A stretch of DNA of 16,617 bases, taken from assembly GCA_002794465.1 (NCBI GenBank), contig MTSL01000018.1:1-16617 (forward strand), in the 5' to 3' direction. Both the position numbers and the translations under genes were made by a program. Source of the stretch: Paramicrosporidium saccamoebae KSL3. Taxonomy: Eukaryota; Fungi; Cryptomycota. Below the pieces are notes generated by a model, which saw only the letters and a program-made list of their open reading frames with translations, did no database searches and was not told the origin of the DNA. Of the stretch, positions 1-16,617 are shown one piece after another. How positions within the stretch are numbered: the first letter of the stretch is position 1; each line of letters starts with the position of its first letter.

Positions 1-1
1 C

Positions 2-103
2 TGTGGTCACCGGCCACCGAACAAATCAGGTTTTCGCAAAGCTTTCAGTGAGGTAAGTCAGCTGTTCTCTTCGCCTGCATATTTTTGCAAGACTTGCTTA
101 TAG
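2..103 (+). CDS. 3' end of a family A paralog (copy A0), truncated by the window edge
   Basis: Frame 2 reads CGHRPPNKSGFRKAFSEVSQLFSSPAYFCKTCL-TAG. This aligns without gaps to the C-terminus of copy A1 (CRYRPQERQALKKVLQWIERLVISPPYLCEVC), sharing C, RP, SP, Y and the terminal CxxC. It is too short to appear in the ORF track. Confidence 0.6.
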   Translation, partial: CGHRPPNKSGFRKAFSEVSQLFSSPAYFCKTCL

Positions 104-176
104 TTGATTCTATTTTCGGCAGATTAACTTTGGTCTACAAATACTTTGAATTTCTGGCCCCTGCTGAGTCGTCGCT

Positions 177-1158
177 ATGGACGCTGTCATAACCATCTTT
201 GCGATAATGGGCGCGCTAATTGCCGGTTTCCAAGCGTGCGAGGCAAGCCTGAAAGGGCACAAAGGAGAACCCGGGTGTCTCGTGCTGATCAAGTTTATCT
301 TTTGCCTTGTGGTGCTGTTCGGAGGGCCCGTAGTGACCGCTGATAGAGCCGCCTGGTCCCATGGTCTTGGCGGAGGGTTGGTATGTATAGCTCTAGGCAC
401 GATGTCCTTTCGAGTTATCCGCCAGCATCGCCATAAGAAGGCCATCATTCCTGACCTGCCAATCCCGGTCCTGTGGCGGGTCTTTGATGCACGTCTAGTT
501 GGGGGCCAGAAGCTCAGCTTTGAGGCTTTCAAAGCTGAATACAAGAGCACCAACGAGCGCTTAGGGGCTGGAGGCATTGGAGAGACGGCAGCATTATTGC
601 TGTTCGTCGACCCATTGGAACTTTCCGTGCCAAGAGTGGTGCGTAGAGTGCTTTATCGCAGCGAAGGCGTTTATAAGCGCCAAAGACATGGACTTGGTAA
701 GCGTGGTACGCTTCCTCTGGAAACGTGACCTGTTTAATCAGGAAACGCGACTGGAAATGACTATGGATGCCTTGGGGCGTCTAGGAAGTGAGCTGGCGGA
801 AGACCTTCGTGCTGTCCTCTCCCTCCAGTACCCCACCAATCCGTGGATTTCGGAACGTTTTGGAACCGAAGCTGCACGGAGGAGAGCCGCCAACCCCAAC
901 ATGATTCCTTTTGACGGCCTCCAATCGAGCATGTGGCATGCTGGAGGGGACTTTGAAGAGTGTCGGTTTTGCCGCTACCGACCCCAGGAGAGGCAAGCGC
1001 TCAAGAAAGTGCTACAGTGGATAGAGAGGCTGGTAATCTCACCCCCTTACCTCTGTGAGGTTTGTGAATATAAGGGTATTGAATTGAGCCTTACTGGAAG
1101 AACCATATCAGAGGAATCCGATGACTCCCCCGGCACCAATGTAAATTCTATTGTGTAA
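177..1158 (+). pseudogene. Family A copy A1: membrane protein with F-box-like motif and CxxC-x27-CxxC, frameshifted at about 627
   Basis: ORF 177..728 matches the N-terminal half of A3 up to LLLFVDPLELS, and ORF 577..1158 matches the C-terminal half from CQEWCVEC on. The junction ctt tcc g tgc is 2 nt short of A3 gcc tcc cgc tgc. A1 also lacks the intron and about 37 codons present in A2/A3. Confidence 0.65.
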
Positions 1159-1585
1159 ACAGTACTGGAGATGTCAAGGTGGCTATAATCAAGAATGAAG
1201 GCAGTAGCTATGCGAGTTCTGGAAGCACTTGATACAGAAAATTTCTCATCACCAATAAATCCATTTTATAATCTTTTTGGATAATGAGGAAGGTGGGCAA
1301 AATAATTGAGTGAGCGAGCTAGGTTCCCATGTGTCCTAATGTAATTTATAGTCCAAATATCGGTATAAAATATAACCCGAGTCAAGATTGATCCTGCGAT
1401 GTTTGGAAGACTGGCCAACTCGAACACTTTACAGCTTTTTATTTACAACCCCGTACCCTTGACTGTTATCGATATTCATGTCTAAAAGCAATGGCTATAT
1501 ACGAGTCTAAAGTTTATTAACGAAGAGTTAACTCTGATAGATTAGAGTATCCGGCGACATGTTAACACAGCTCCCGATGAAATAG

Positions 1586-2431
1586 TCAAGATTCACCCCG
1601 CCTTTTTAATTGAAAGTAGTCATGGCAGTCAAGTAGAATAGGATCCATCAATAATCGACAGCAGTGACATGGCGTATTTGAAGCGCGTTCATACCATGTG
1701 CCTTTTAACCCGTGATGAAACAGCAAGCTCATGTAATGTATCAGAAATAGCTCTCCTTCGGGTCCTTCCAGGACACACATTTGCACACCCAAGAGCTTTC
1801 GGGTACATAACTTTCCATCCAAAAATACTTTGTCCCTCCACAAATTGGGTGATATATGACGAAGAAGAAAAGTTTGCATCTGCCCAGACAGAGCAGAGCC
1901 CATTATAAAAAAAAGGATAGTGTTGATACCGAGGAAACAGCCAGCGCAAAGCAATGCTGCCAGCAGTATGAACGGGGCAACATTGGTGGATATTACTACT
2001 AACCATCCCAGCCATTTCGTGTACTTTTCTGTACAATGAAGATTAATGTATCTTTTTCTTAGACAGTATACCCCATCACGGCTGTGATAGTAGGCCAAAG
2101 ATAATGCATCAGGTGACTCCCAGACCGAAAAGAAGAGTCCGAGGTGTTTCAGAACATACAATTCATAGCAGTGGAATTTATCAGTGCTCTGAAATTTGGC
2201 AACTATGAAAGAACGGAGACTTAGCTGCTCAATGAGCCACATTAACGGCACACCTGCCACAAAGCCGATCCAAATGGAAGCATACATGATCCAGCCCCAG
2301 AATGGATAGCAAATATTGACGACATTCCAAATCATGAATAGCGTCAAGAGCACATCAATGATAATACAGAGACATTTTACCAGTTTTGGAACAATCGTGC
2401 TTCCTTTGGCAGGCTTGAATGTGACATACAT
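1586..2431 (-). CDS. Family B copy B1: 281-aa membrane protein with two tandem MscS-like (TM hairpin + beta-domain) units
   Basis: It aligns almost without gaps to the paralog at 7007..7825. The ATG at 2431 matches the paralog start, and the upstream TTG extension carries a 2-nt indel relative to the paralog, so it is non-coding. There are four hydrophobic segments and an internal repeat KHLGLFFSVWESPD-ALSLAYY / KLLGVQMCVLEGPEGELFLIHY. The gene call is strong; the MscS assignment is by-eye (about 0.55). Confidence 0.8.
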   Translation of the reverse strand: MYVTFKPAKGSTIVPKLVKCLCIIIDVLLTLFMIWNVVNICYPFWGWIMYASIWIGFVAGVPLMWLIEQLSLRSFIVAKFQSTDKFHCYELYVLKHLGLFFSVWESPDALSLAYYHSRDGVYCLRKRYINLHCTEKYTKWLGWLVVISTNVAPFILLAALLCAGCFLGINTILFFIMGSALSGQMQTFLLRHISPNLWRDKVFLDGKLCTRKLLGVQMCVLEGPEGELFLIHYMSLLFHHGLKGTWYERASNTPCHCCRLLMDPILLDCHDYFQLKRRGES

Positions 2432-2513
2432 TGTCGAATGAGGGAGCTGGAGTAGCTCTTTGCATATATTGTCGTCCAATGGGAGTGACTCCTGAATGAT
2501 AATGTGGGATGAC

Positions 2514-2538
2514 TATTTATAGGCACTGGGACGATTGG
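2514..2538 (-). promoter_or_regulatory. TATA box (TATAAATA, 2514..2521) and CCAAT box (2534..2538) of B1
   Basis: Both motifs are conserved in order and near-identical spacing upstream of paralog B2. Confidence 0.6.
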
Positions 2539-2894
2539 TCAGTCAGATTAAACAAGAATATTGAGGATAGGCCTCATATAGTAATGTGTCGCTATTTGTC
2601 TAGACGTGTCTGATACTGGTGAAAGCTACATAGTCTTTCGAGCCACCAATTCGACAAAGACTGTTCAGTTGCAATGTCCAGCAATTGGTCTAATGAGTTG
2701 GTATTCTCATAATAGTCATCCAACGGAAGATTGGACCGGCTGAAACATTAATCCAATGCAGTCATCTGGTAATATTAAAATCTTGTTGCTCAGATAAACA
2801 CCAATATGCTAAGGTTGTGCACAATCATGAAACTGTCGATACACGACTGCTAGCTTTAACAGGTCCGCCTCTCCAAGAGCGTGTCATCTATCCT

Positions 2895-2996
2895 CGAACC
2901 AATCACACTCAGCATGATTAGAGTTTATGCCAAGTGCCGAGTCTTAATCGCCGCCTTTAACTACCAGACCCGGCCGCTAGTTGACTTACTCAGCAG
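2895..2996 (+). promoter_or_regulatory. A2 promoter/5' UTR with CCAAT at 2899..2903
   Basis: About 100 nt of non-coding sequence is clearly homologous to 4599..4704 upstream of A3. The CCAAT lies about 98 nt before the ATG. Confidence 0.5.
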
Positions 2997-3875
2997 ATGG
3001 ATACAGTCATTACAGTCTTCGCTCTCGCCTGTACGACCGTGGCTGGTATGCGCACCTGCTATTTGGGCCTGCTGGCAGAGAATTTGAATGGATGGCTGAC
3101 CGTTGGTGAAATGTTCGTTCACTCTGTGGTGCTATTCAGTGGAATGATTGTGGCAGCTGGAGCGGCCAGTTGGTCCTACGGCGTTGGTGGGGGACTAGTA
3201 TGCACCTTTATTGGGCTACTGGCAGGTCGGTGCTGGTGGGAGCATCGTAAGAATGTACGACTCGCCGAGGTGCTCGGTGGACTATGTCCCAATGGATCGT
3301 GGAGCAGGGCCGAATCGTTCCGCCAGGCGCTCTCAGTATCAAGTGTCTCAATCGCCCTCATTTTTGTAGGTCGCCATAAATCGATTTCATGAAGTCGACA
3401 CGTCCTTGATCCCCCAGTTGCCGCTAGAAACCATGGCAAGGGTTATGATGCCTACCTCACTGGGAATCGATACCTCAGTATCCAAACTTTTAAAAAGGGG
3501 TGCTTAAGTACTGTGGCGTGTTTTGAGGTGCGCGGTTTTGGGAAGATGGTTACTCTATTGCTTTTTGTGGAACCCACCGAAGTCTCTTACTGCCAGAAGT
3601 GGTTTGGTGAGCGTGGGACGATCTTGGGAAATTTCCGCAAGGAGCTGACCGATGTTATCAAGCATCTCTGGAAAAAGAAAACACTGGTACGATCGCTTCA
3701 ACTAGACTGCACCTTGAACGCCATGAGACGCCTGGATGACGAGAAACAGCAGGCGCTGCACGAAGCTTACCCGTGGGATCTATGGATCGAGGCATATCTG
3801 CCAAGACTGCCAGGTATGAATGTTGTCACTCCAGAGCAACATTGGACTCTGGCAGCAAATGGGCGGCGTCGTTGA
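2997..3875 (+). pseudogene. Family A copy A2: spliced (intron 3336..3369), 1-nt deletion at about 3443, divergent C-terminus lacking the CxxC pair
   Basis: It is near-identical to A3 in the 5' third and has the same 34-nt intron. After splicing, agg gtt atg atg needs one more T (gtt tat gat gcc tac = VYDAY; A3 has VYDTY) to reach the conserved frame of ORF 3513..3875. Uncorrected, it stops at TAA 3505..3507. No CxxC occurs in any plus frame of 3830..4000. Confidence 0.65.
3336..3369 (+). other. 34-nt spliceosomal intron (GTATCA...TGTAG) in A2
   Basis: It is orthologous in position and sequence to the A3 intron, at the same 1708-nt offset as the ATGs. Confidence 0.7.
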
Positions 3876-4598
3876 ATACCTATTGTATGGGTTTCAGCTC
3901 ATTAAAAAGGCATTTCTATTGGCTGTGGAATATCACAGAGGACCATGTGCCTGGTCGAGCTCATGCAAGGCCGTCTAGGCCCAGACACGCTACGGATTAG
4001 TAAGCTGCGCTAGGATTATCCAAGCATCTACAGCAATGCAGTAGCTAGATTCTTGGAACATCCTAGTGTAGTTGCAAAGTAACTGACAGTAATGCGACCG
4101 ATTGTCAGATTTTGTCTCAGTGGCGGTTAGTAATGCTCGCACTATTCACTACAACCTGCCAAAGCCGGTACCGACCAGCAAGTAAAAGAGCTACACAGCT
4201 TCCGACTTGTTAAAAAGCTAGTAGTGAACCCTTATTTTGCCTCGAGTGATTAGCAGTGATTCTTTCAATTCTCATCATGAAGTATAACTAAGGTAATAGA
4301 ACGGCTGGCTAGCCCTTTATCGAGAACCGTTCACCTAATACTTGATAGAATCTCGATAGATTTAACGTGTAGACAAAGTCAACGTGCAATATTAATGTAC
4401 ATGGTCTGTTAACATTGTTTGGTTGATGGTTTAGCAGGTTTGGCTGCTACGTTAATATAGTGACGCCATCGAGTTACACTGAACACTTGTTACTTAAAGA
4501 CTAGTATTTTAATGTGGTGCACAAGCATGGAGCTGCTGGAATATGACTCCTGGCCTCAAAAGTTCCGTCTCGCCAAAGGCGCGCCATTTACCCTTGCA

Positions 4599-4704
4599 TC
4601 AGCCAATCATATTCAGCATGACTAGAGTTCATGCTGAGTGTTGAGTCTCAACTGCCGCCCATAAATACCTCCGTCCCCCGGCCGTTAGTTGACTCCCTCA
4701 GCAG
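4599..4704 (+). promoter_or_regulatory. A3 promoter/5' UTR: CCAAT 4603..4607, GCCGCC then CATAAATA TATA-like at about 4660..4667
   Basis: The motifs are visible directly, and the region is homologous to the sequence upstream of A2. Confidence 0.5.
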
Positions 4705-5842
4705 ATGGATACAGTCATTACAGTCTTCGCTCTCGCCTGTACGACCGTGGCTGGTATGCGCACCTGCTATTTGGGCCTGCTGGCAGAGAATTTGAATGGA
4801 TGGCTGACCGTTGGCGAAATGTTTGCCCATTCCGTGGTGCTCTTCGGCGGGACAATTGTGGCAGCTGGTGCGGCCAGTTGGTCTTACGGAGTCGGCGGAG
4901 GGCTAGTATGCATTTCTGTTGGGCTACTGGCAGGTCGGTGCTGGTGGGAGCATCGTAGGAATGTACGACTCGCTGAGGAGCTCGGTGGACTATGTCCCAA
5001 TGGATCATGGAGCAGGGCCGAATCGTTCCACCAGGCGCTCTCGGTATTAAGTGTCTCAATTGCCCTCATTTTTGTAGATTGCTGTGGATCGATTTCACGA
5101 AGTCGACACGTCCTTGATCCCTCAGCTACCGCTGCAAGTTTTGGAACGAGTATACGACACCTACTTGACCAAACAACCATACCTAAGCCTCCAGGATTTC
5201 AAGAAGGAGTGCTTGAGCACTGTGACGTGTTTCGAGGCGTACGACTTTGGGAAGATGGCCGCCTTATTGCTTTTCGTGGAACCCATCGAAGCCTCCCGCT
5301 GCGAGGAGTGGTTTGTTGAGTGCGGAACGATCTTGAGAATCTTCCGCACGGCCAAAGGCAAGGAGTTGGCCGATATCATCAAGTACCTCTGGAAGAAGAA
5401 GACACTGGTACGATCGCTGCAGCTCGACTGCACCTTGAACGCCATGCGACGCCTGGATGACGAGGAAAAGCAGGCATTGTGCTTGGCATTGTACGAAGCT
5501 TACCCTTGGGACCCCTGGATCGAGGCATATCTACCAAGACCGCCAGGCGTGGAAGCTGTTACCTCCGAGACGCGTCCCAAGCCCCTTCCAGATATTCCCA
5601 TTGAACGCTGGTACCCGACAGACAGCTTTGCTCAATGTCGCCTGTGTAAATTTCGGCCCGCAGAAACAGTCCTTCTTTGGTTCTTTTTGGAGGTTTCAAG
5701 ATCGATGCTCCGGCGAGCCAAATGCTGCACATTCTGTGGATATCGAACGTTAAAACTCAGGCTAATATCCAGTCCAGAGCCAGCAGAAAATCCAGACAGA
5801 GAATTGAGGAACTTCGGGATCTTAAATAATAACTGTTTGTGA
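4705..5842 (+). CDS. Family A copy A3, intact: join(4705..5043,5078..5842), 367 aa; about 3 N-terminal TM helices, F-box-like motif, C-terminal CRLC-x26-CTFC
   Basis: Removing the 34-nt GT..AG intron fuses ORFs 4705..5319 and 5084..5842 in frame (HQALS|IAVDRFHEVDTSLIPQLP). Both halves match the single A1 locus. Confidence 0.8.
5044..5077 (+). other. 34-nt spliceosomal intron (GTATTA...CTCATTTTTGTAG) in A3
   Basis: It has GT..AG ends, a 3n+1 length that exactly repairs the frame, a degenerate branch-like CTCAT 9 nt from the 3' end, and conservation in A2. Confidence 0.75.
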
Positions 5843-7006
5843 GATAGTATAACTACGGACCAGGGATACCAATAAAGGGTCTTTACTCTAACCTCACAAA
5901 GATGTCACTTTATTATATAGTGTACAAGACTGATACAAAGTTTGGCGTAGTTATGGGCAGGTGTAAAAAGATCTAAATAATGGCCAAGGGTGCTGGTTAA
6001 TCACTAGTGGCATGAACCCTCTGCGAGGTTTTATAGTGCCAACTAGTCGGTCGCCTACATTGAGGTATCCTCAGCATCTGCGTGAATCTTGATGATATCG
6101 CTATCTGGACCGGGATCAGCGAACATTGTCTCATAGTAGCAATAGGGGCGCAAATAATGGGCATGTAAAAATTGCCAATGAAAGTGCAAAGGCTCGAAAG
6201 GCAAAGACAACGATGAGCATAGCAGAGCGTATCCCCAAGCCACCTGAGTAATTTGGACCAAATACATCTCCAACTTTAAATACAAATTTGATAAATAAAC
6301 CGTAGGTGTGTCAATTTACAGGAATCGCAAAATTCAGGGTATCCATGATTTGGCATCTTGGATTTAAAAGTCCAGATCTGAATGGGCACCCTGACATTTC
6401 AGCCAGTCTGAATGGATTTAAACCCTACTGTATCGCACTGATTGCTTGCCAATCACCTGGCTTGAAGACATTCGATTTGGCTATCAGGTTCTCCAGTTAT
6501 CTTCGCTTGCAAGGCTGTGGCAGAACTGTTAAAGTAACATTAAACGTGTTATTTTCCACAAAGCGGTGGCGGCTATTGCACTGTGCGATGCCCATATTCG
6601 AAAAAGTAAAGTCTGTGATGGTTACTGTACAGTGCAACATTATGTATAAGCTAGGCTTGTTCGTCGTCCGATCATCTAAACGATTAAAATACTTGACATT
6701 CGTACTTTCAGTATACGGCCCCCTTGTCGTGTGGTGGGGATAAAACCACAGACTTTGTCACGTTTGTTCGGGAGGTAAGGGAACTTTTATTATATGCGTG
6801 CAAGTCATTTTATAGTCTCACAAATAACATAATCACAAAATGGTAAAGATGTAGATCTCATTATCCTTCATCGATCGCTCCGACTATCTCTTCTCCAAAC
6901 TAGGGAGATATCCTCAAATACCCAACTAATCAATCCTCTACGTCACACCCTTACAAACGGGGTTATTTATTGCTGTGGCAACTGTTATAATGGTATCAAA
7001 GGCACG

Positions 7007-7825
7007 TTACGCTTTGAGGTCAAGTGGAACTGGATCCATCAGTGAATAGCAGCATGTACATGACATATTGTACGCTGCCCGGACAAACCAGTGGCGTCTT
7101 GTGTAGTGATCAAAGATTACCGCCATGTAAGGTGTCAGGAATAGTTCACCCTCTGGTCCCTCCAGAATACACATCATGAAGCCGAGGAATTTCCGTGTGC
7201 ACATCCTTCCATCCAAGAACATTTTATCTTTCCACAAATATAACTCTCCAAAGCGGGCTATGACTGTGTACAGTTGGTCTGATAGAGAAACGCCCATCAG
7301 AAAGAATAGAGCCGTACCGATGCCAAAAAAGTAGCCTGCGCAGACTAGTATAATCAGTAGTACTAACGGGATGGCATCAGTGGACAGAACGATGAGCCAA
7401 CTCAGCCATTTGTTGAATTCTCGTTGATCACCAAGAAGAACATGCCTCTTTCTTAAGCAGCTCACATGATCCTCTTTGTGATAATATCCCAGGGCCAAGC
7501 AATCGGGTTTTTCCCAGACCGAAAATAGAAATCCAAGGTGCTTCAAATCATGCTTACCGTTAGATACAAGCTGATCTTTAGGCTTAAGTCTGGATGCCAC
7601 AAAGGAACGGATGCTGAAGCGTTTGATGAGCCAGTAAAAGAAGGGGTATGGAACAAGACCGACCCAGATGGAAATATACGTGGTCCAGCCCCAGAATGGA
7701 TAGCAAATATTGACGACATTCCAAATCATGAATAGTGCCAAGAGCACATCAATGATAACGCAGAGACATTTAACCAGTCTTGGAACGATTGTGCTTCCCT
7801 TGGTGGGCTTGAATGTGATATGCAT
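7007..7825 (-). CDS. Family B copy B2: 272-aa membrane protein with two tandem MscS-like units
   Basis: It is a paralog of B1, with 41/47 identical residues at the N-terminus and roughly 45% further on. It keeps RLKPKDQLVSNG, KDKMFLDG..CT, EGPEGELFLTPY and C-x-CC..LMDP. Confidence 0.8.
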   Translation of the reverse strand: MHITFKPTKGSTIVPRLVKCLCVIIDVLLALFMIWNVVNICYPFWGWTTYISIWVGLVPYPFFYWLIKRFSIRSFVASRLKPKDQLVSNGKHDLKHLGFLFSVWEKPDCLALGYYHKEDHVSCLRKRHVLLGDQREFNKWLSWLIVLSTDAIPLVLLIILVCAGYFFGIGTALFFLMGVSLSDQLYTVIARFGELYLWKDKMFLDGRMCTRKFLGFMMCILEGPEGELFLTPYMAVIFDHYTRRHWFVRAAYNMSCTCCYSLMDPVPLDLKA

Positions 7826-7905
7826 TGTCGAATGGGGAAGCCGGAGTAATCTCGCATGTATTATCGTCCAATAGGAGTGACTCCGGAATGATAATGTGGG
7901 ATGAC

Positions 7906-7930
7906 TATTTATAGATAGTGTGGCGATTGG
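7906..7930 (-). promoter_or_regulatory. TATA box (7906..7913) and CCAAT box (7926..7930) of B2
   Basis: Both are conserved with the B1 upstream region. Confidence 0.6.
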
Positions 7931-8312
7931 CCAGTCAATTGAACAACAATAGTGTGGGCCAGTGCTATAAATTGGTACGATGCTATTTATTTAGTTACGT
8001 CTGAAGTGGATGACCCATTCCGGGGTAAATAACGTGCAGATGGAATGCAACGAGTGTAACTGAAAACAAAGCGGCAGGCTCTTTACTCCGTTACGCTAAA
8101 AATACGCCACTAACTCCTGTAGCCCAAATATTGACTCTAAAAGAGTGTTGGCTTTCTTTGCAAATTTTTGTACAATGCTAGAGGTTTATTGGCTGGCTGA
8201 TGCTCAACTATATTGCATCGCAATGGTAGTCTTTGTACTTGTATACCATTAGGCAGATGGCTTGTTGCAGTGTGATACGATTGTCGGAACGGACGTGTCC
8301 TTGTGGAGTAGG

Positions 8313-8882
8313 TTACTTTTTTGATTCTATTGGAACTGGTTCCAGTTCGGTCTCGGCCACGGTTGCCTCATCAGGGGCAGGGGTCTCCACCATTGATCGT
8401 TTCTTTTCGGGTTCTGACGGTTTAGGAGAGATTGTCTCCTCATTGATAACATGCAATGGCCGGCCCGCGACCTCAGGCTCGGGAGCAGGAAGTGATTTCT
8501 CCAGATCCGAATCTTGATTCTCGCCGTGTGGCACCAGGAAAGAGGTCGTTAATGCGAGTACACCCAATAAACATAGCACGACGAGCACCCATCTGTCGAT
8601 CAGTATCACGACAGTGGGCAATCTCTGCACCGACCACGCCAAAGCACTAACCACGAGCATTAGGGCCGTAAAGTTTTGCATCCGTGGCACAAAACAAACG
8701 GAAATGCAACAACTGCCAGCCAACACGTGGAATGCTAGAAAAATGATCATTGGGCCGTCAAAACTAGACCATGCCTGGGAGCCCTTTTCGTAGTAAGACC
8801 AACATACCATGATGAATGGCCAGGAAACTAAAATTGCACCCAGAGCGAGAAACGCTATAGTAGCGGGAAGGTTGCGAGACAT
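8313..8882 (-). CDS. Orphan 189-aa membrane protein: about 4 TM helices and an acidic Pro/Glu-rich C-terminal tail
   Basis: It has an ATG start, four hydrophobic segments followed by a DLEKS...PEPE...ETELEP low-complexity tail, and a CCAAT on the coding strand at 8909..8913. Confidence 0.7.
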   Translation of the reverse strand: MSRNLPATIAFLALGAILVSWPFIMVCWSYYEKGSQAWSSFDGPMIIFLAFHVLAGSCCISVCFVPRMQNFTALMLVVSALAWSVQRLPTVVILIDRWVLVVLCLLGVLALTTSFLVPHGENQDSDLEKSLPAPEPEVAGRPLHVINEETISPKPSEPEKKRSMVETPAPDEATVAETELEPVPIESKK

Positions 8883-9315
8883 GCGGAGCGCGTGTGCAGA
8901 TTGTCCTTATTGGGCCGAGGGGAGTATAGCCAGAGCATGCCATCAACCAATCGTCGCGTAGTAGAGGTGGTCATTGCCGGCTGGTGACACCTGGGACCGA
9001 AATTATCACTGACTCGATAAACATTGCTTGTGTGCCTTGATAGACGCTTAAACAGAGCGCCGGTAAAATCAATTTGCATATCTGACGCCTCTATTCAACT
9101 TCACAATTCCAAACAGAGAATCAGTCTATCCCCAATGAGATTCCTTTCTACAGCCAGCCAACCGCCAATTTCTCCTAAATAAGGATAGACTGTGTTGGAC
9201 TACAAACCTGGCAGACAGGCGGTTTGAATAAACACATTTGTAATTTCTGGCACGCAGCAATTCCTATTGGCCGCCGATAGTACATTTGCCCTCGTTGTCG
9301 CCGGGGTGGAGGGAG

Positions 9316-9930
9316 ATGAATACTGCACAGCACAGCACACCATATGCCCCCCAACAACCTACTGCTAATCTGGTTAAGCAACGGAACATGGGAGGCATCG
9401 CAATTTACTCTATAGTGGGATTTCTACTATTGCTTGCGTGCCCGAGCTTTCTAGCGGGCCAGAACTATTCATCCGGTATCGTAGCGGTGTTGGCTGGGGC
9501 CGGCTGTATCTTGGCCTGTACCCCCATGGCCACCAATGCAACTAATCGCGCGACTGGCTTCCTACTCATCGTGTATCCTATAGTAATCTTCTTTGATACT
9601 TGGAATCCGTTGGTATTCCCGATCCCCATATTGATATCACTCCCACTGCTCTATCCGATGGAGTCGCCAAAGTTTGCTCGGTTTAGGCCGTTCAAGTTGG
9701 TTTCCCCCACGCTGCCCTATTATGCTTCGCCTATGCCCTATGGAGTCCCACAATACGGAATGCCGATGGCCGCCCCACATGTCATGACGCCGCCAGTAAT
9801 GCAGCAGCCAGTGTACACGCCTCAACCAGTGTATACGCCTCAACCCGTGTATACGCAACACCCCACTTACATGCCACAGCCGCCTACGCCGTCGCCCCCG
9901 ACGTATCAGCAGTACCAAGAGAAACGATAG
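9316..9930 (+). CDS. Family C copy C1: 204-aa protein with 3-4 TM helices and a Pro/Tyr/Gln/Met-rich tail with PY motifs
   Basis: It is a full-length paralog of 10342..10953. The ATG at 9316 matches the paralog start, so the TTG at 9286 is rejected. Confidence 0.8.
   Translation: MNTAQHSTPYAPQQPTANLVKQRNMGGIAIYSIVGFLLLLACPSFLAGQNYSSGIVAVLAGAGCILACTPMATNATNRATGFLLIVYPIVIFFDTWNPLVFPIPILISLPLLYPMESPKFARFRPFKLVSPTLPYYASPMPYGVPQYGMPMAAPHVMTPPVMQQPVYTPQPVYTPQPVYTQHPTYMPQPPTPSPPTYQQYQEKR
9808..9879 (+). repeat. Four degenerate 18-nt coding tandem repeats (PVYTPQ PVYTPQ PVYTQH PTYMPQ)
   Basis: ccagtgtacacgcctcaa / ccagtgtatacgcctcaa / cccgtgtatacgcaacac / cccacttacatgccacag. Confidence 0.85.
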
Positions 9931-9982
9931 AGACCCACTGTTGGTCATGATCATTAAATGCAAACACGGAGACACAGTAAAC

Positions 9983-10195
9983 TTATTACTACCAGCTATT
10001 GGACCTTTTGATTTCATGTGTATCGTTTGGATTTTTTCATGCCAAACCGTCCCTGATCCCCGTGTTGGCTGCAATATCATTGCTCATTTCGACAGAATCC
10101 GAGGTCTGGGCAGCTTTTGGCTATACAGATAGTTCGGCATCACTTGCATTCGACAAGCTCTCTCGTAGTCGGTCAACCCCAATGTCTCCTAACCA
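9983..10195 (-). pseudogene. Decayed remnant of the 3' end of an Nha1-type antiporter gene
   Basis: TTATTACTA (TAG TAA TAA on the minus strand) lies 53 nt after the C1 stop, exactly as the NHA triple stop lies 53 nt after the C2 stop. The minus-strand translation LGDIGVD--RLRESL resembles NHA LSDVVVDDPTLRETF at a similar distance from the stop. In-frame stops are present. Confidence 0.45.
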
Positions 10196-10341
10196 ATGTA
10201 ATAAATAATGATAGGCGGTATTAGGTCCCAAATTTGACAGACAGACGGTCCAAGTAAACACGCTAAAGATTGTTTACTCCCAGCAATTCCCATTGGCTGT
10301 CGCCAACACACTTGACCTCGTTGTTGCTAGGGTGGTGAGAG

Positions 10342-10953
10342 ATGAATCCTGCGCCGTACGGCACACCATATACCCCGCAACAATCTAATGCTAATCTGAT
10401 TAAGGAACGGAATACGGGAGGTACTATACTTTACGCTATATTGGGAGGTCTGCAGTTGTTGGGGTGCTTGATCTCTATTATGGAGCCGGACTATTCGCTT
10501 GCTTTCATAACGGGATTTGCCGGGATCGGCTGCATCTTGGCCTGTACCTCCATGGCCACCAATGCATCTAACCGCGCGACTGGTTTCCTACTCATCGTGT
10601 ACTCCATAGTGGCATTCTTTGATGATTGGAATCCGTTGGTATTCCCGATCCCCATATTGACGTCGATCCCGCTGTTTTCGTCAATGGAGTCACCAAGGTT
10701 TTCCAGATTTAGACCGTTCAGGTTTGTTTCCGCCACGCTGCCTTACTATGCTTCCCCCACACCTTATGGAACTCCACAGCACGGCATGCCGATGGCTGCC
10801 CCACATGTCATGATGCCACCAATGATGCCGTCAATGCACACACCGCAACCAATGCATACACCACAACCAATGTACACACAGCAACCAACGTACATGCACC
10901 AGTCGTCTACACCAACGCTCCCAATGTATGGACAGTACCAAGAGAGACAATAA
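10342..10953 (+). CDS. Family C copy C2: 203-aa protein with 3-4 TM helices and a Pro/Tyr/Gln/Met-rich tail with PY motifs
   Basis: It is a paralog of C1 with a shared upstream region, including ATTGG exactly 50 nt before both ATGs. Confidence 0.8.
   Translation: MNPAPYGTPYTPQQSNANLIKERNTGGTILYAILGGLQLLGCLISIMEPDYSLAFITGFAGIGCILACTSMATNASNRATGFLLIVYSIVAFFDDWNPLVFPIPILTSIPLFSSMESPRFSRFRPFRFVSATLPYYASPTPYGTPQHGMPMAAPHVMMPPMMPSMHTPQPMHTPQPMYTQQPTYMHQSSTPTLPMYGQYQERQ
10831..10902 (+). repeat. Four degenerate 18-nt coding tandem repeats (SMHTPQ PMHTPQ PMYTQQ PTYMHQ)
   Basis: tcaatgcacacaccgcaa / ccaatgcatacaccacaa / ccaatgtacacacagcaa / ccaacgtacatgcaccag. Confidence 0.85.
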
Positions 10954-11011
10954 AACCCACCAGTGCAAGTGTTCGCTAAATACAAAAACGGAAATAAAGT
11001 AAAGTTTATTA

Positions 11012-12673
11012 CTAACCACTGGACTCGATAGATTCCATCTGTCCATCCGGTCGATGGAGTTGATTGGATTTATCTGGTTGGTCACGTTGATCGGATTGCT
11101 CAGCGTGCTTCTTTCGTCGTCGTGGGGACTGGATTGATGAGCCGGGCGATTCAAATGTCTCACGCAACGTGGGATCATCCACCACCACATCTGACAATGG
11201 CGATTCTGTCAGCTCGTCTTCCCCTTCACCCTCGTCGTCAGTGATATACACATATTCCTCCTCGTGCTCCTCATGCGGGTCCAAAATGGGAGTTTCAGCA
11301 GGGGTCTCTCCCAGCACTGACATGGAAGCCAATTGTTGGGCCAATTTGTTACGACGCTTTACCTTGCGCTTCATGCGGCGCTTCAAGTGCGAGTTGGTCA
11401 GAGGCACAGTGATTCCGTGGATCAGAATGCTTCCCAATACGACAAAGGTGACGACGGGAAAGATGGACTCTAGGAACGCGGAATCGACGACGGTTGTGGG
11501 ATGGGCTTGGAAAATATCGCGTGCCTGGATGGCAAAGAAGATGGCACCCACCCCGATTGGTCCAAACCAGCCGGCAAAGAACGCCTCCTTCTTGCTCTGC
11601 AGCGTGGGAATGACATGGCGCATGAGCATTACAATTGGGAGTCGTCGGAACAGCAGAATCAGCCCCGCAGTCAGGGACAGCTTCAGGATGCCAAATCGGG
11701 CAAACTCGGCCCAGGGGATCAGTGCACCCAGAAAGACGAAAAAGGTCATGTTGAACAACATGTCCATGACTTCGGCAATGTGTGAATCCTGGGTGGCTGA
11801 GTCAAATGTGTCATCCCAGGCAAACACATTTCCCGCAATGAAAATGGCAAACAAATCGTCACTGGCCATCAGTGCCACCAGTCCCGACACGAACATTGTC
11901 AGCGCAATGGTAAACACTAAAAACGACTCTTTGTCAATGAGTTTGCGCGCCATTGATGCCTTCAGCAAGGTGCGTGCACCAAATCCGCAAATAAAGCCCA
12001 CAATGATTGAGACGAGAATTTCCCACAGCCACGTGTGCACCAACCAATGTGCAACGGCATCGCCTGGGGACGATTGGAGCATGAGCCAAATTGGCAACAT
12101 CATAAAGGGGAAGCCAAGACCGTCGTTGGCTCCACTTTCCACGGCCAGGAGATGGCGCAGCCGGGTGGGAATGTACCGTTCAGCAAATTTGCCTTTAATC
12201 ACCGAATGTGCCAACACGGGATCAGTAGGCGTCACACAGGCCGCAATAATAAAACTTTCTCTCCATCCGAGTCTCAGGGCGACCTGAATGCACAATGCAC
12301 TGATTATCCACATGACCACCATGACCGGGCCCAGCATCATTCCGATCGCCAGTTTGTTGCTTCGTAGAAATTCGCCTGGAACTGACACACCGGCCGCCAT
12401 GACCTGCAGGCCGATGACTATGCGCGCTGCCTCGCGCAGCACATAGCTGTGGTCTGGAAACCACTGCTGTGGTGTCACTACCCCCAAACCCACTGGGCCA
12501 AAGGCAACACCCACGAGGGTGGCCACCAGGGACTCGGTAAGGTACAGTTTTTCCTTGACGAACAGCGACACCAGTCCGAATAGTCCGATGAAGCCGCCCA
12601 GCAGCACATAGTTGGAGTGCAGCGCACTGGGCGGCGTGCTCCACAGCTCTCTAAAGAAGTCGAATAATCCCAT
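11012..12673 (-). CDS. NHA1: Fungal-type plasma-membrane Na+(K+)/H+ antiporter, CPA1 family, 553 aa
   Basis: It carries the hallmark motifs KEKLYLTE, TPTDPVLA, ESGANDGLGFPF, DDLFAIF, DMLFNMTFF and GWFGPIGVGA, about 12 TM helices and a charged tail. The first in-frame ATG is at 12673, where similarity to Nha1 N-termini begins; the ORF-track start at 12823 is a TTG. Confidence 0.92.
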   Translation of the reverse strand: MGLFDFFRELWSTPPSALHSNYVLLGGFIGLFGLVSLFVKEKLYLTESLVATLVGVAFGPVGLGVVTPQQWFPDHSYVLREAARIVIGLQVMAAGVSVPGEFLRSNKLAIGMMLGPVMVVMWIISALCIQVALRLGWRESFIIAACVTPTDPVLAHSVIKGKFAERYIPTRLRHLLAVESGANDGLGFPFMMLPIWLMLQSSPGDAVAHWLVHTWLWEILVSIIVGFICGFGARTLLKASMARKLIDKESFLVFTIALTMFVSGLVALMASDDLFAIFIAGNVFAWDDTFDSATQDSHIAEVMDMLFNMTFFVFLGALIPWAEFARFGILKLSLTAGLILLFRRLPIVMLMRHVIPTLQSKKEAFFAGWFGPIGVGAIFFAIQARDIFQAHPTTVVDSAFLESIFPVVTFVVLGSILIHGITVPLTNSHLKRRMKRKVKRRNKLAQQLASMSVLGETPAETPILDPHEEHEEEYVYITDDEGEGEDELTESPLSDVVVDDPTLRETFESPGSSIQSPRRRKKHAEQSDQRDQPDKSNQLHRPDGQMESIESSG

Positions 12674-12844: not shown

Positions 12845-12970
12845 GTATCATGTCTCGTTAATTCAAGTCGATTTACTAGAGTGTGCTAATTGACCACATC
12901 CTTCTAGTTTGGTCTAGCCCATAAATTTCCATTTTTAGTTGCATCTGCAAGGAGATACTTTATGTATAAT

Positions 12971-13354
12971 TTATGCGGTGGAATGCTTCAAATAAGCAAT
13001 AATGTCTACATTGTAAGGCTAATTGGGTCGAAATACCGTGGCGTTCCTTGGGCTTCTTCAGTCCCGCAAATGCCATCTTTGTGCCGGGAATGTACTTTTT
13101 CGGGTTCTCCAGATACTCAAAGAGAGTATCCGTGTCCCACGTAATTCCTTTGCTTTTGTTTGCGTCAGTGTATGCGTATCCCTCCACTGCACCCGTCTTT
13201 CGTCCGAACAGTCCATAAAGGTTGGGACCTAGCTTGTTTGAACCCCCCTAGACGAGTTGGCACTCTATCCTCTAAATACCTTTTCCACAGTGTGGCATTG
13301 TCCACATCGAGTCTTGAACAGCTTTGCTCCAATCTCCACGTCGCCCTCGGTCAT
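12971..13354 (-). CDS. CYC1: Mitochondrial cytochrome c, complement(join(12971..13005,13037..13247,13280..13354)), 106 aa
   Basis: The spliced product is [25 protein letters not shown]|[19 protein letters not shown]...[23 protein letters not shown](D)|[10 protein letters not shown]. It has the CxxCH heme-attachment motif and the GTKM axial Met; the exons total 321 nt, in frame. Confidence 0.97.
13006..13036 (-). other. 31-nt intron 2 of cytochrome c (GTATTT...CTTACAATGTAG)
   Basis: Its removal restores the conserved C-terminal R-x-D-I-I-A-Y-L-K helix. Confidence 0.92.
13248..13279 (-). other. 32-nt intron 1 of cytochrome c (GTATTT...CCAACTCGTCTAG)
   Basis: Its removal joins CHTVEK to [10 protein letters not shown] in frame, as in other cytochromes c. 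Confidence 0.92.
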
Positions 13355-14982: not shown

Positions 14983-16392
14983 TTAGTCGATGGCAATGGT
15001 GGCGACAATGCAAACTGATTTTTCATCAGAAATTTCGAGAAATTGCTCAGCAATGTGTTCTGGTGGGTTGGTTGGCAGAAATATGAGCTGTTTCAACTTT
15101 AGCGTTGACAATTTTTTACGGGGTCCAACCACAACTACGTCCCCATCCTTGACGTCTGCGGTACGAATAGAGTTGTGAGAAGACCAAGCAATGGGGACCA
15201 GAAGTGCTCCTTGGGGGCGGAGAAGAACCACTCCAAGCGGACAGTTGCCAATAGATCTCATCAACAGTCGGCGGTTCTCACAAAGGTCGACAACGAGACC
15301 ATCAGCTACCTTTGAGTACACTCCGAAAACATTCGGATCATCCAAAATAGTCCTATCGAGTTGGTTAACATCCAAATACGGATCAAGTATGCGATCATTA
15401 GAACCCGAATTCGAGTACCGATCCAGGAGTACTATCTTTTCCCGAGTTATCTGGCAGGTCATTTTATGAGTAAAACCAGTCATATGGTTGCCAAACACTT
15501 GTGGCTGCAAGGCTCCATGAACACAGCGATCAAAGAAGCGGACGGATGGCGCTAGAGAATCGTCATCGGTTTGAGAAGCCGAATAGACACCCGCGTCACG
15601 ACGAAACCACGTTGCAAACGAAGCCGGCTCATCGATTGGCTTGTGAGCTAGCTTGTCAGCTGGCTTAACTGACTTGTCCACCGCCACATCAATTATATTG
15701 TTTACGGGATTTAGGAAATTGGGAGAGGATTCGGTCGGAGGAGTTTGTAGACTTATGACTGGCTTTTCCGTTGCATGTGAGTCGTCCTGACTAGGTTTAC
15801 TTTGATGGGAGGGATTATAGCTGGCATCTGGATGTTTATCCAGCTTCTTAGAAGCAAGCGCTGGGACAGTGGATGCCAAGAAAATGGGTTTTGGGGGAAT
15901 GGATGCAGGGTTTGGAAGAATAGGGGGCGAGGGGACGGATGCCGAAATGTTGTTCGTTGGGATGTCAAGTTCGGGAGAGCACGGCACGGAAGGTTCGGAT
16001 AAGAGGATCTCTAATGTTTCTTCCAAAGCTTCGGGTTGGTGTTACAGGCACTCTTTCGGTAAAGAGTCGTGCAACCACTGCAAATGACACGTTTTATCAG
16101 TCACCAAGTTGAAATTTGTGTCTTCATAGGTCAAAAAAGCGGGATATGGCTCTGAAAGTATCGATTCTTCAAATTCTTGGGAATCTTCAACTGGGCCATA
16201 GATTAGGTTGATATTTAGGTCACTGGGAGGGACTAGTGGCACTGATTTGTCATCAGCTTCACGGGTGAAGAGACCTGGAAACACATTTTCAACGGACCAA
16301 CCTTTGTCTTCAAGTCGGATCTGATAGAGCCGATTGTGTTTTGTTGCGGAGCAGATGGATAGCCCAAGTATTATGACCAGAAAAAACGTCAT
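14983..16392 (-). CDS. Putative secreted protein: signal peptide, Pro/Ser-rich linker, degenerate PPM (PP2C/SpoIIE-like) domain; one in-frame TAA at 16042..16044
   Basis: ORFs 16042..16485 and 14983..16026 are in the same frame, separated only by TAA (LPKECL*HQPEALEETLE). ATG 16392 begins MTFFLVIILGLSICSA-TK, a signal-peptide pattern. The second ORF has no early ATG (its track start is a TTG). Confidence 0.6.
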
Positions 16393-16617
16393 GAGATAAT
16401 CCCTGGTCGCGTTGTGAATCAACAGGTATCGTTGCGCAATGAACAGCCCCTGACTCGGGGACACGGGATTCCCGAATGCTATCAAAAAAGTTTGTTAACA
16501 TGATGTGAAATGGTACACCTTTATTGAGAACATGAGGGATTAGATCACAGATTAGTACGTGTGGTTAGATCAAGGTAGCATTATGAATTTAAACAAGGCA
16601 ACCACTTTACATATTAT

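Follow-up and report, generated by a model that had tools for sequence, protein, structure and literature searches.

An uncalled family of four-helix membrane proteins with a partner gene in Paramicrosporidium saccamoebae, and its possible relation to the core of MscS channels

Are two small membrane-protein genes on a contig of an intranuclear parasite members of the MscS channel family, and, if so, does each of their products carry one channel core or two? The window analyzed here is the entire contig MTSL01000018.1 (16,617 nucleotides [nt]; assembly GCA_002794465.1) of Paramicrosporidium saccamoebae (Rozellomycota), and its gene content is eukaryotic, with an NFS1-type cysteine desulfurase, an Na+/H+ exchanger, and a cytochrome c exon. 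This species parasitizes the nuclei of amoebae, and its genome is reduced, with 3750 predicted genes and a GC content of 47% (PMC5701793). The two genes, B1 and B2, had originally been predicted, from the letters of the window, to encode tandem-fused pairs of minimal MscS-like cores. We found that they belong to an undescribed, lineage-restricted orphan family of roughly 270-amino-acid (aa) four-helix membrane proteins, that they are paired with a second gene, A, and that the C-terminal half of B carries at most a faint MscS-core-like signal, which makes the MscS link a lead and not a finding.

The B family and its constraint

Both open reading frames (ORFs) were located where the original prediction had placed them, with B1 at 1586..2431 on the (−) strand (281 aa plus stop) and B2 at 7007..7825 on the (−) strand (272 aa plus stop). 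Each is uninterrupted and intron-less, the B1 start is an ATG that matches the family N terminus MY[VL]TF, and the ATG of B2 also matches the conserved N terminus. The two are paralogs with 57% identity (E = 2e-114), in agreement with their earlier description as small paralogous membrane proteins without a cage domain. B2 has no gene call in the public annotation; the B1 region lies outside the stretch of annotation that was fetched, and the uncalled status of B1 rests on the finding that no NCBI protein occurs among the homologs of B. Specifically, a search of 5.8 billion proteins returned 15 B homologs, all of them unnamed, without a Pfam domain, and located on short metagenome contigs, with none from NCBI. 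An exhaustive profile hidden Markov model (HMM) search of 1.84 billion cluster representatives returned 12 proteins, every one of which is a B family member or a fragment of one, and a scan of metagenome contigs revealed no extra B loci. A second P. saccamoebae contig, MTSL01000086.1 (locus L087), holds three further intact B genes on the (−) strand, at 7221-8018, 8707-9513, and 11634-12434, which are 48 to 52% identical to B2 and have no public gene call, plus one fragment. P. saccamoebae thus carries at least five intact B paralogs on contigs MTSL01000018.1 and MTSL01000086.1, and their absence from the gene calls is an annotation gap in this genome that leaves the family invisible to comparative studies of Rozellomycota and Microsporidia.

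The lack of a gene call at these positions and the lack of any Pfam match could also be accounted for if B1 and B2 were not genes but chance ORFs or decayed remnants. Against this explanation, intact ORFs of 263 to 281 aa are kept at at least nine loci, including those of metagenomic relatives, the family alignment contains 17 invariant residues, and the ratio of nonsynonymous to synonymous substitution rates (dN/dS) is about 0.2, with pairwise values across B members ranging from 0.17 to 0.26 (0.26 for B1 versus B2). Conservation and dN/dS effectively refute the non-gene explanation, which we regard as scarcely credible. Because dN/dS lies between 0.17 and 0.26, the B genes are, on the evidence of their sequences, real and under purifying selection.

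Synonymous divergence is distributed unevenly along the paralogs. Between B1 and B2, dS is 0.58 over the first 79 codons and saturated over the remainder, and the two genes share 88% identity over their 5′ 200 nt and a block of 85 nt upstream (2259-2545 versus 7653-7937). Two of the L087 copies (a and c) have a dS of 0.05 in some segments and of 0.5 in others, and a mosaic of the same kind is seen between the B copies of L088 and L093. Because dS forms such a mosaic along the B paralogs, the pattern indicates segmental gene conversion, by which the arrays have been homogenized in patches. The upstream blocks themselves, at 2462..2545 (−) for B1 and 7854..7937 (−) for B2, belong to one repeat family (D5) and are partners with 88% identity; TATTTATAG lies within the first, which is a candidate promoter for B.

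The partner gene A and the A/B arrays

The original prediction had missed both the partner gene and the array structure. B and A, a gene of 374 aa, follow each other alternately on the metagenome contig L001, and the window contains three copies of A on the (+) strand. A1 (177..1158) is convergent with B1, with a gap of 427 nt between the 3′ ends, and shows a shift of frame through a 1- to 2-nt insertion or deletion near nt 620, which reflects either a frameshifted copy or an assembly error. A2 (2997..3875) is degenerate, with 1 nt deleted and the 3′ part truncated, while A3 (4705..5842), which is convergent with B2, is apparently intact; its best model comprises 367 aa after intron removal, and the public annotation has a 316-aa model at this position. 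A2 and A3 derive from a 1708-nt tandem duplication (2969-3836 versus 4677-5569), the first ~300 nt of which are 91% identical, and it was after this duplication that A2 acquired its 1-nt deletion and lost its 3′ part. The second P. saccamoebae contig carries a further member of the A family, PSACC_01160, for which a search of the supplement returned no record of expression, as well as fragments of A.

In all seven informative cases (two in the window, two on L001, and one each on L087, L088, and L090), A and B are arranged tail to tail (A-> <-B), and on both P. saccamoebae contigs the arrays are located at a contig end, namely the start of MTSL01000018.1 and the end of MTSL01000086.1. In members of the A family, three N-terminal transmembrane (TM) helices are followed by about 280 aa of cytoplasmic domain, in which Trp residues are invariant, and by a C-terminal CxxC...CxxC motif. 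These proteins match no Pfam family, and a PDB profile search with A gave zinc-finger noise only (E about 0.5). The view that the A/B pair is an orphan two-gene membrane module, amplified and gene-converting, with B under purifying selection, is well supported.

A candidate spliceosomal intron of 34 nt (GT...AG) was observed in A3 at 5044-5077 (+), delimited by GTATTAAGT...TTTTTGTAG and situated at A residue ~115. Two metagenomic A genes (L088 and L090) change frame at the same residue, while PSACC_01160 and the L001 copies do not. Introns as short as 34 nt are reminiscent of microsporidian introns.

The structure of the arrays also bears on the idea that A and B form a selfish or conflict module of the toxin-antidote or killer-immunity type, in which one product would damage membranes and the other would neutralize it. 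Such a module would explain why the genes are amplified, why some copies have decayed, and why the distribution is patchy, and it agrees with the strictly conserved linkage of the two genes, the arrays at contig ends with degenerate A copies (A1 frameshifted, A2 truncated, and the fragments on L087), the gene-conversion mosaics, and the extremely narrow phylogenetic range. However, purifying selection acts on B across deep paralogs, Pfam searches revealed no similarity to known toxin or antitoxin families, and the window contains no signature of a mobile element. We consider a selfish module improbable.

Families that reduced parasites amplify usually matter for their lifestyle. In P. saccamoebae, at least five intact B genes and several A genes persist in arrays under purifying selection, although the genome is reduced, with 3750 predicted genes (PMC5701793).

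The two halves of B and their relation to MscS

The B2 product was modeled with AlphaFold2 from an alignment of 17 sequences, and the best model reached a predicted local distance difference test score (pLDDT) of 73.6 and a predicted template-modeling score (pTM) of 0.64. Its secondary structure comprises two successive blocks of similar layout. The N-terminal module (residues 1-138; 7412..7825 on the [−] strand, with its B1 counterpart at 2018-2431 [−]) contains TM1 and TM2 (helices 13-40 and 43-79) and a first beta-rich region with six strands in 92-138. In the C-terminal module (residues 139-232; 7130..7411 [−], with its B1 counterpart at 1736-2017 [−]), TM3 and TM4 (helices 139-167 and 169-193) are followed by a second beta-rich region with four strands in 201-232. 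A C-terminal helix (233-252) and a Cys cluster (C-x-CC, with the consensus CxCCxSLxDP), encoded at 7010..7129 (−) and predicted to be cytoplasmic, complete the protein. The most confident part of the model spans residues 181-240 (pLDDT of 81 to 89), and residues 139-180 of TM3-TM4 reach 64 to 76. When half 1 was modeled alone, it folded poorly (pLDDT of 52 overall and 31 to 41 in the beta region), and a fold search with this model returned noise only.

The distribution of charge suggests how B may be oriented in the membrane. The TM1-TM2 loop (NICYPFWG) and the TM3-TM4 loop (GYFFGIG) contain no charged residues, and the basic stretches are found at the N terminus, in region 66-138 between TM2 and TM3 (14 Lys plus Arg), and in the tail. 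Because of this distribution, the positive-inside rule predicts that the N terminus is inside, that the two beta regions lie in the cytoplasm together with both termini, and that almost nothing is exposed across the membrane. Since so little of B would face the far side, the predicted topology argues against a role as a variant surface antigen and is in keeping with a module that faces the cytoplasm, like that of MscS.

A separate observation concerns the first beta-rich region, where residues 94-104 (LKHLGFLFSVW; 7514-7546 in B2) form the most conserved stretch of the family and resemble the RNP1 motif of RNA recognition motif (RRM) domains. A PDB profile search with this N-terminal unit (unit 1) pulled in the RRMs of hnRNP A1 at an E-value of about 1, and we judged this relation to be chance or noise.

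When the B2 model was compared with the PDB using Foldseek, 34 of the top 50 neighbors proved to be MscS-family chains (AtMSL10, MscS, YbiO, MSL1, Flycatcher1, and TcMscS). The top match was AtMSL10 (E = 0.075, probability 0.84); the MscS-family matches, all of them below significance, have template-modeling scores of about 0.2 and 70 to 95 aligned columns, and open-state MscS and MSL10 superpose on the model at 3.2 to 3.6 Å over about 70 columns. In a library of predicted viral structures, the MscS-family protein of Sylvanvirus, a kind of protein that is rare among viruses, ranked fourth (E = 0.16). We tentatively attribute these MscS-family neighbors to the C-terminal module of B2. The same module yielded the second signal. 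The original prediction had placed unit 2, i.e., the C-terminal of the two repeated blocks, in register with the TM3/beta-domain pattern of MscS and had seen a resemblance in unit 1 as well. We scored these registers with an ungapped column-versus-column comparison over all 236 B windows, using a shuffle null based on the maximum over windows. The unit-2 register (B2 200-235 versus EcMscS 134-169) ranked first of 236 (P = 0.009-0.02), and its rank was 1 to 2 in both B clades and 1 to 4 against each of six MscS paralogs taken singly. In comparison, the register of unit 1 was unremarkable (rank 27 to 88 of 236).

The internal duplication that had been described for each chain, with units about 117 aa apart that each consist of a TM hairpin followed by a beta-rich motif, was borne out in its layout. 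The predicted structure has two such blocks, and in B1 as in B2 two copies of the strict motif K-x-LG-x4-[VI]-x-E-x-P-[DE], at residues 95 and 212, are spaced by exactly 117 aa; the copy at B2 residues 95-108, within the N-terminal module, reads KHLGFLFSVWEKPD. However, the motif is present in both halves of only 3 of the 26 family members, and neither half has it in the divergent copies from the second P. saccamoebae contig and from metagenome contigs. BLASTP of one half against the other gave E = 0.002-0.006 over 50 to 66 aa within each of B1 and B2 and no match across the paralogs, and a profile comparison of the halves by hhalign gave P = 0.005 with 17 sequences but P = 0.096 with 26, when 46 of 200 block-shuffled nulls reached the real score and a reversed control scored similarly. 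B therefore has a repeated architecture and one common short motif, and a duplication of the halves by sequence homology is not demonstrated.

These results also determine the standing of the architecture originally proposed, in which each chain would carry two homologous minimal MscS cores in tandem and would build even-numbered pseudo-symmetric rings (3x2 or 4x2), possibly from B1 and B2 mixed. The TM-hairpin-plus-beta architecture repeated in the model, the common 15-residue motif 117 aa apart in B1 and B2, and the weak BLASTP matches between halves speak for it. Its weaknesses are that the repeat loses significance as sequences are added, with nearly a quarter of the nulls as good, that few members hold the motif pair, that unit 1 has no MscS register signal, and that unit 1 is not confidently folded alone. 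We found no support for two fused cores per chain, and the even-numbered ring, which depends on the double core, is likewise unsupported; we regard this architecture as very unlikely, even less probable than a selfish module. If true, a double-core B, perhaps in the form of a B1/B2 heteromer controlled by a zinc-ribbon partner A, would be an MscS architecture that has never been described.

Our own preference, which is tentative and held with less than even confidence, is for an arrangement in which only the C-terminal half of B is related to MscS. B would oligomerize in the membrane into a small channel-like ring through TM3-TM4 and beta region 2, the half of the protein that would correspond, after much divergence, to the TM2-TM3-beta-domain core found in cage-less MscS proteins such as TcMscS and microsporidian MscS2. 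TM1-TM2 and beta region 1, the N-terminal half, would serve as an accessory module and not as a second core, which would be compatible with a canonical odd-numbered (heptameric) ring. A may be a membrane-anchored cytoplasmic partner or regulator of B. Two precedents make such a core conceivable: cage-less MscS channels that consist of two TM helices and a beta-domain are functional heptamers (TcMscS, PMC12334622), and Microsporidia, relatives of P. saccamoebae, have compacted and expanded minimal MscS2 proteins (PMC11262690).

Several results weigh against this diverged-core arrangement. Searches against Pfam MS_channel (PF00924 and related families), a check that the original prediction had proposed, gave no match at E ≤ 10 for B1, B2, any of their four halves, or any of the 17 members examined. 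PDB sequence profile searches with the full-length protein, unit 1, and unit 2 returned no MscS chain, the exhaustive HMM search of 1.84 billion proteins returned no MscS protein, and hhalign of each B half against an MscS-core profile gave P of about 0.5. This profile was built from E. coli MscS (the query being identical to PDB entries) and five divergent K-12 paralogs, which were chosen since a scan of bacterial and archaeal genomes gave only enterobacterial orthologs with 81 to 99% identity. As a positive control, YbdG, YbiO, YnaI, and MscK were left out in turn and compared singly with the MscS-core profile, which recovered them at P = 4.5e-11 to 3.9e-21. In global mode, hhalign of B against MscS picked trivial end overlaps and not the unit-2 register. 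At the proposed register, moreover, the residues G133, G143, V145, and P166, which are invariant among the six MscS paralogs, are not conserved in B. Their counterparts are Lys or Glu (G133), Cys in 23 of 25 sequences (G143), Arg or Leu (V145), and a variable residue that is Pro in 6 of 24 (P166), and the only conserved counterparts are those of D134, T144, and D159. B thus cannot be filed as a member of the MscS family.

The structural signals and the register are open to objections as well. Foldseek of the B2 model against the PDB, a comparison that had also been proposed at the outset and that did return mostly MscS-family neighbors, gave nothing at E ≤ 0.001; since unrelated proteins reach E = 0.015-1 in the viral library, the best value of 0.075 falls inside the noise range. 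Only one of the five AlphaFold2 models of B2 is confident, with a mean pLDDT above 70 (73.6, 63.0, 48.1, 47.0, and 44.8 for the five), and the score of the unit-2 register, which was picked by eye, is negative in absolute terms (−6.1).

A near-equal rival of the diverged-core arrangement, and one to which we give almost the same tentative credence, is that B has an unrelated novel fold and forms with A a lineage-specific membrane complex that is not a channel, such as a scaffold, an adaptor, or an organelle-membrane factor. The echo of MscS would then stem from the generic shape of a helix followed by a small beta-meander, or from a bias of AlphaFold. This explanation draws on the uniformly negative MscS sequence and profile tests alongside a working positive control, the absence of the MscS hallmark residues, the Foldseek E-values in the range of noise, the low confidence of four of the five models, and the presence in the same match list, at similar scores, of other helix-plus-SH3-like barrels, namely an integrase C-terminal domain and a Tudor domain. 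On the other hand, the fold matches fall consistently into the MscS family in two libraries, the unit-2 register is reproducible over clades and paralogs, and no search of any kind pointed to an alternative family.

Comparison with known proteins shows how far a diverged MscS core in B would have to depart from its relatives. The channel TcMscS of Trypanosoma cruzi (PDB 9bgq; PMC12334622) has two TM helices followed by a small cytoplasmic beta-domain and no cage, a layout shared by the C-terminal half of B, and 9bgq is found among the fold neighbors of B2 at E = 1.5. Unlike B, which no test connects to MscS by sequence, TcMscS is recognizable from E. coli MscS (E = 5e-8). B differs further in its additional N-terminal TM hairpin and beta region, in its tail rich in Cys, and in having an obligate neighbor gene. 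TcMscS is a proven heptameric mechanosensitive channel, whereas a channel formed by B is hypothetical. The MscS2 proteins of Microsporidia (Nematocida displodere; PMC11262690) offer a parallel in their extreme compaction to TMH3 plus the beta-domain, in their occurrence in a reduced-genome lineage of intracellular parasites related to Paramicrosporidium, and in the expansion of the gene family despite genome reduction. However, they keep P129, G143, and P166 of the beta-domain (PMC11262690), which B lacks; they comprise 73 to 150 aa with zero to two TM helices, compared with about 270 aa and four in B; and no partner gene has been described for them, whereas B is paired with A. The canonical MscS-like proteins (E. 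coli MscS, YnaI, YbiO, and MscK, Arabidopsis MSL1 and MSL10, and Flycatcher1) are the top structural neighbors of the B2 model but have a TM3-plus-beta-domain core that is detectable by sequence and a C-terminal cage, neither of which B has. Small beta-barrels that follow a helix (Sm-like, SH3-like, and Tudor) reach similar Foldseek scores, so the matched shape is a common one; these are soluble domains with no preceding membrane helix and form a minority of the matches.

The two near-equal explanations have different implications. If B does carry a diverged cage-less MscS core in its C-terminal half, MscS would have been compacted and expanded not only in Microsporidia but also in the related Rozellomycota. 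The form seen in B, with its accessory module and its own partner, would then be useful for defining the minimal mechanosensitive unit. If B is not related to MscS, A and B would constitute a new two-component membrane module in an intranuclear parasite.

Other genes of the window

Positions 1-11000 of the window are an island of lineage-specific membrane-protein genes beside housekeeping genes. The ORFs at 9286-9930 (+) and 10342-10953 (+) are tandem paralogs with 65% identity that encode small proteins with multiple TM helices and Pro/Tyr/Gln-rich tails (PQPVYT repeats). One of the two has a sub-threshold match to TspO/MBR (20.4 bits, versus a cut-off of 24), and the public annotation merges both into a single 433-aa gene at 9316-10953. 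Between the array and this pair, 8313-8882 (−) encodes a predicted 189-aa protein with multiple TM helices and an acidic, Pro-rich tail that belongs to no Pfam family. The cytochrome c exon, at 12960-13187 (−), ends at an apparent intron and has no covering gene call in the annotation listing. At 14983-16485 (−), two adjacent ORFs of 347 aa and 147 aa have no Pfam match and are joined in the public annotation as one 468-aa gene.

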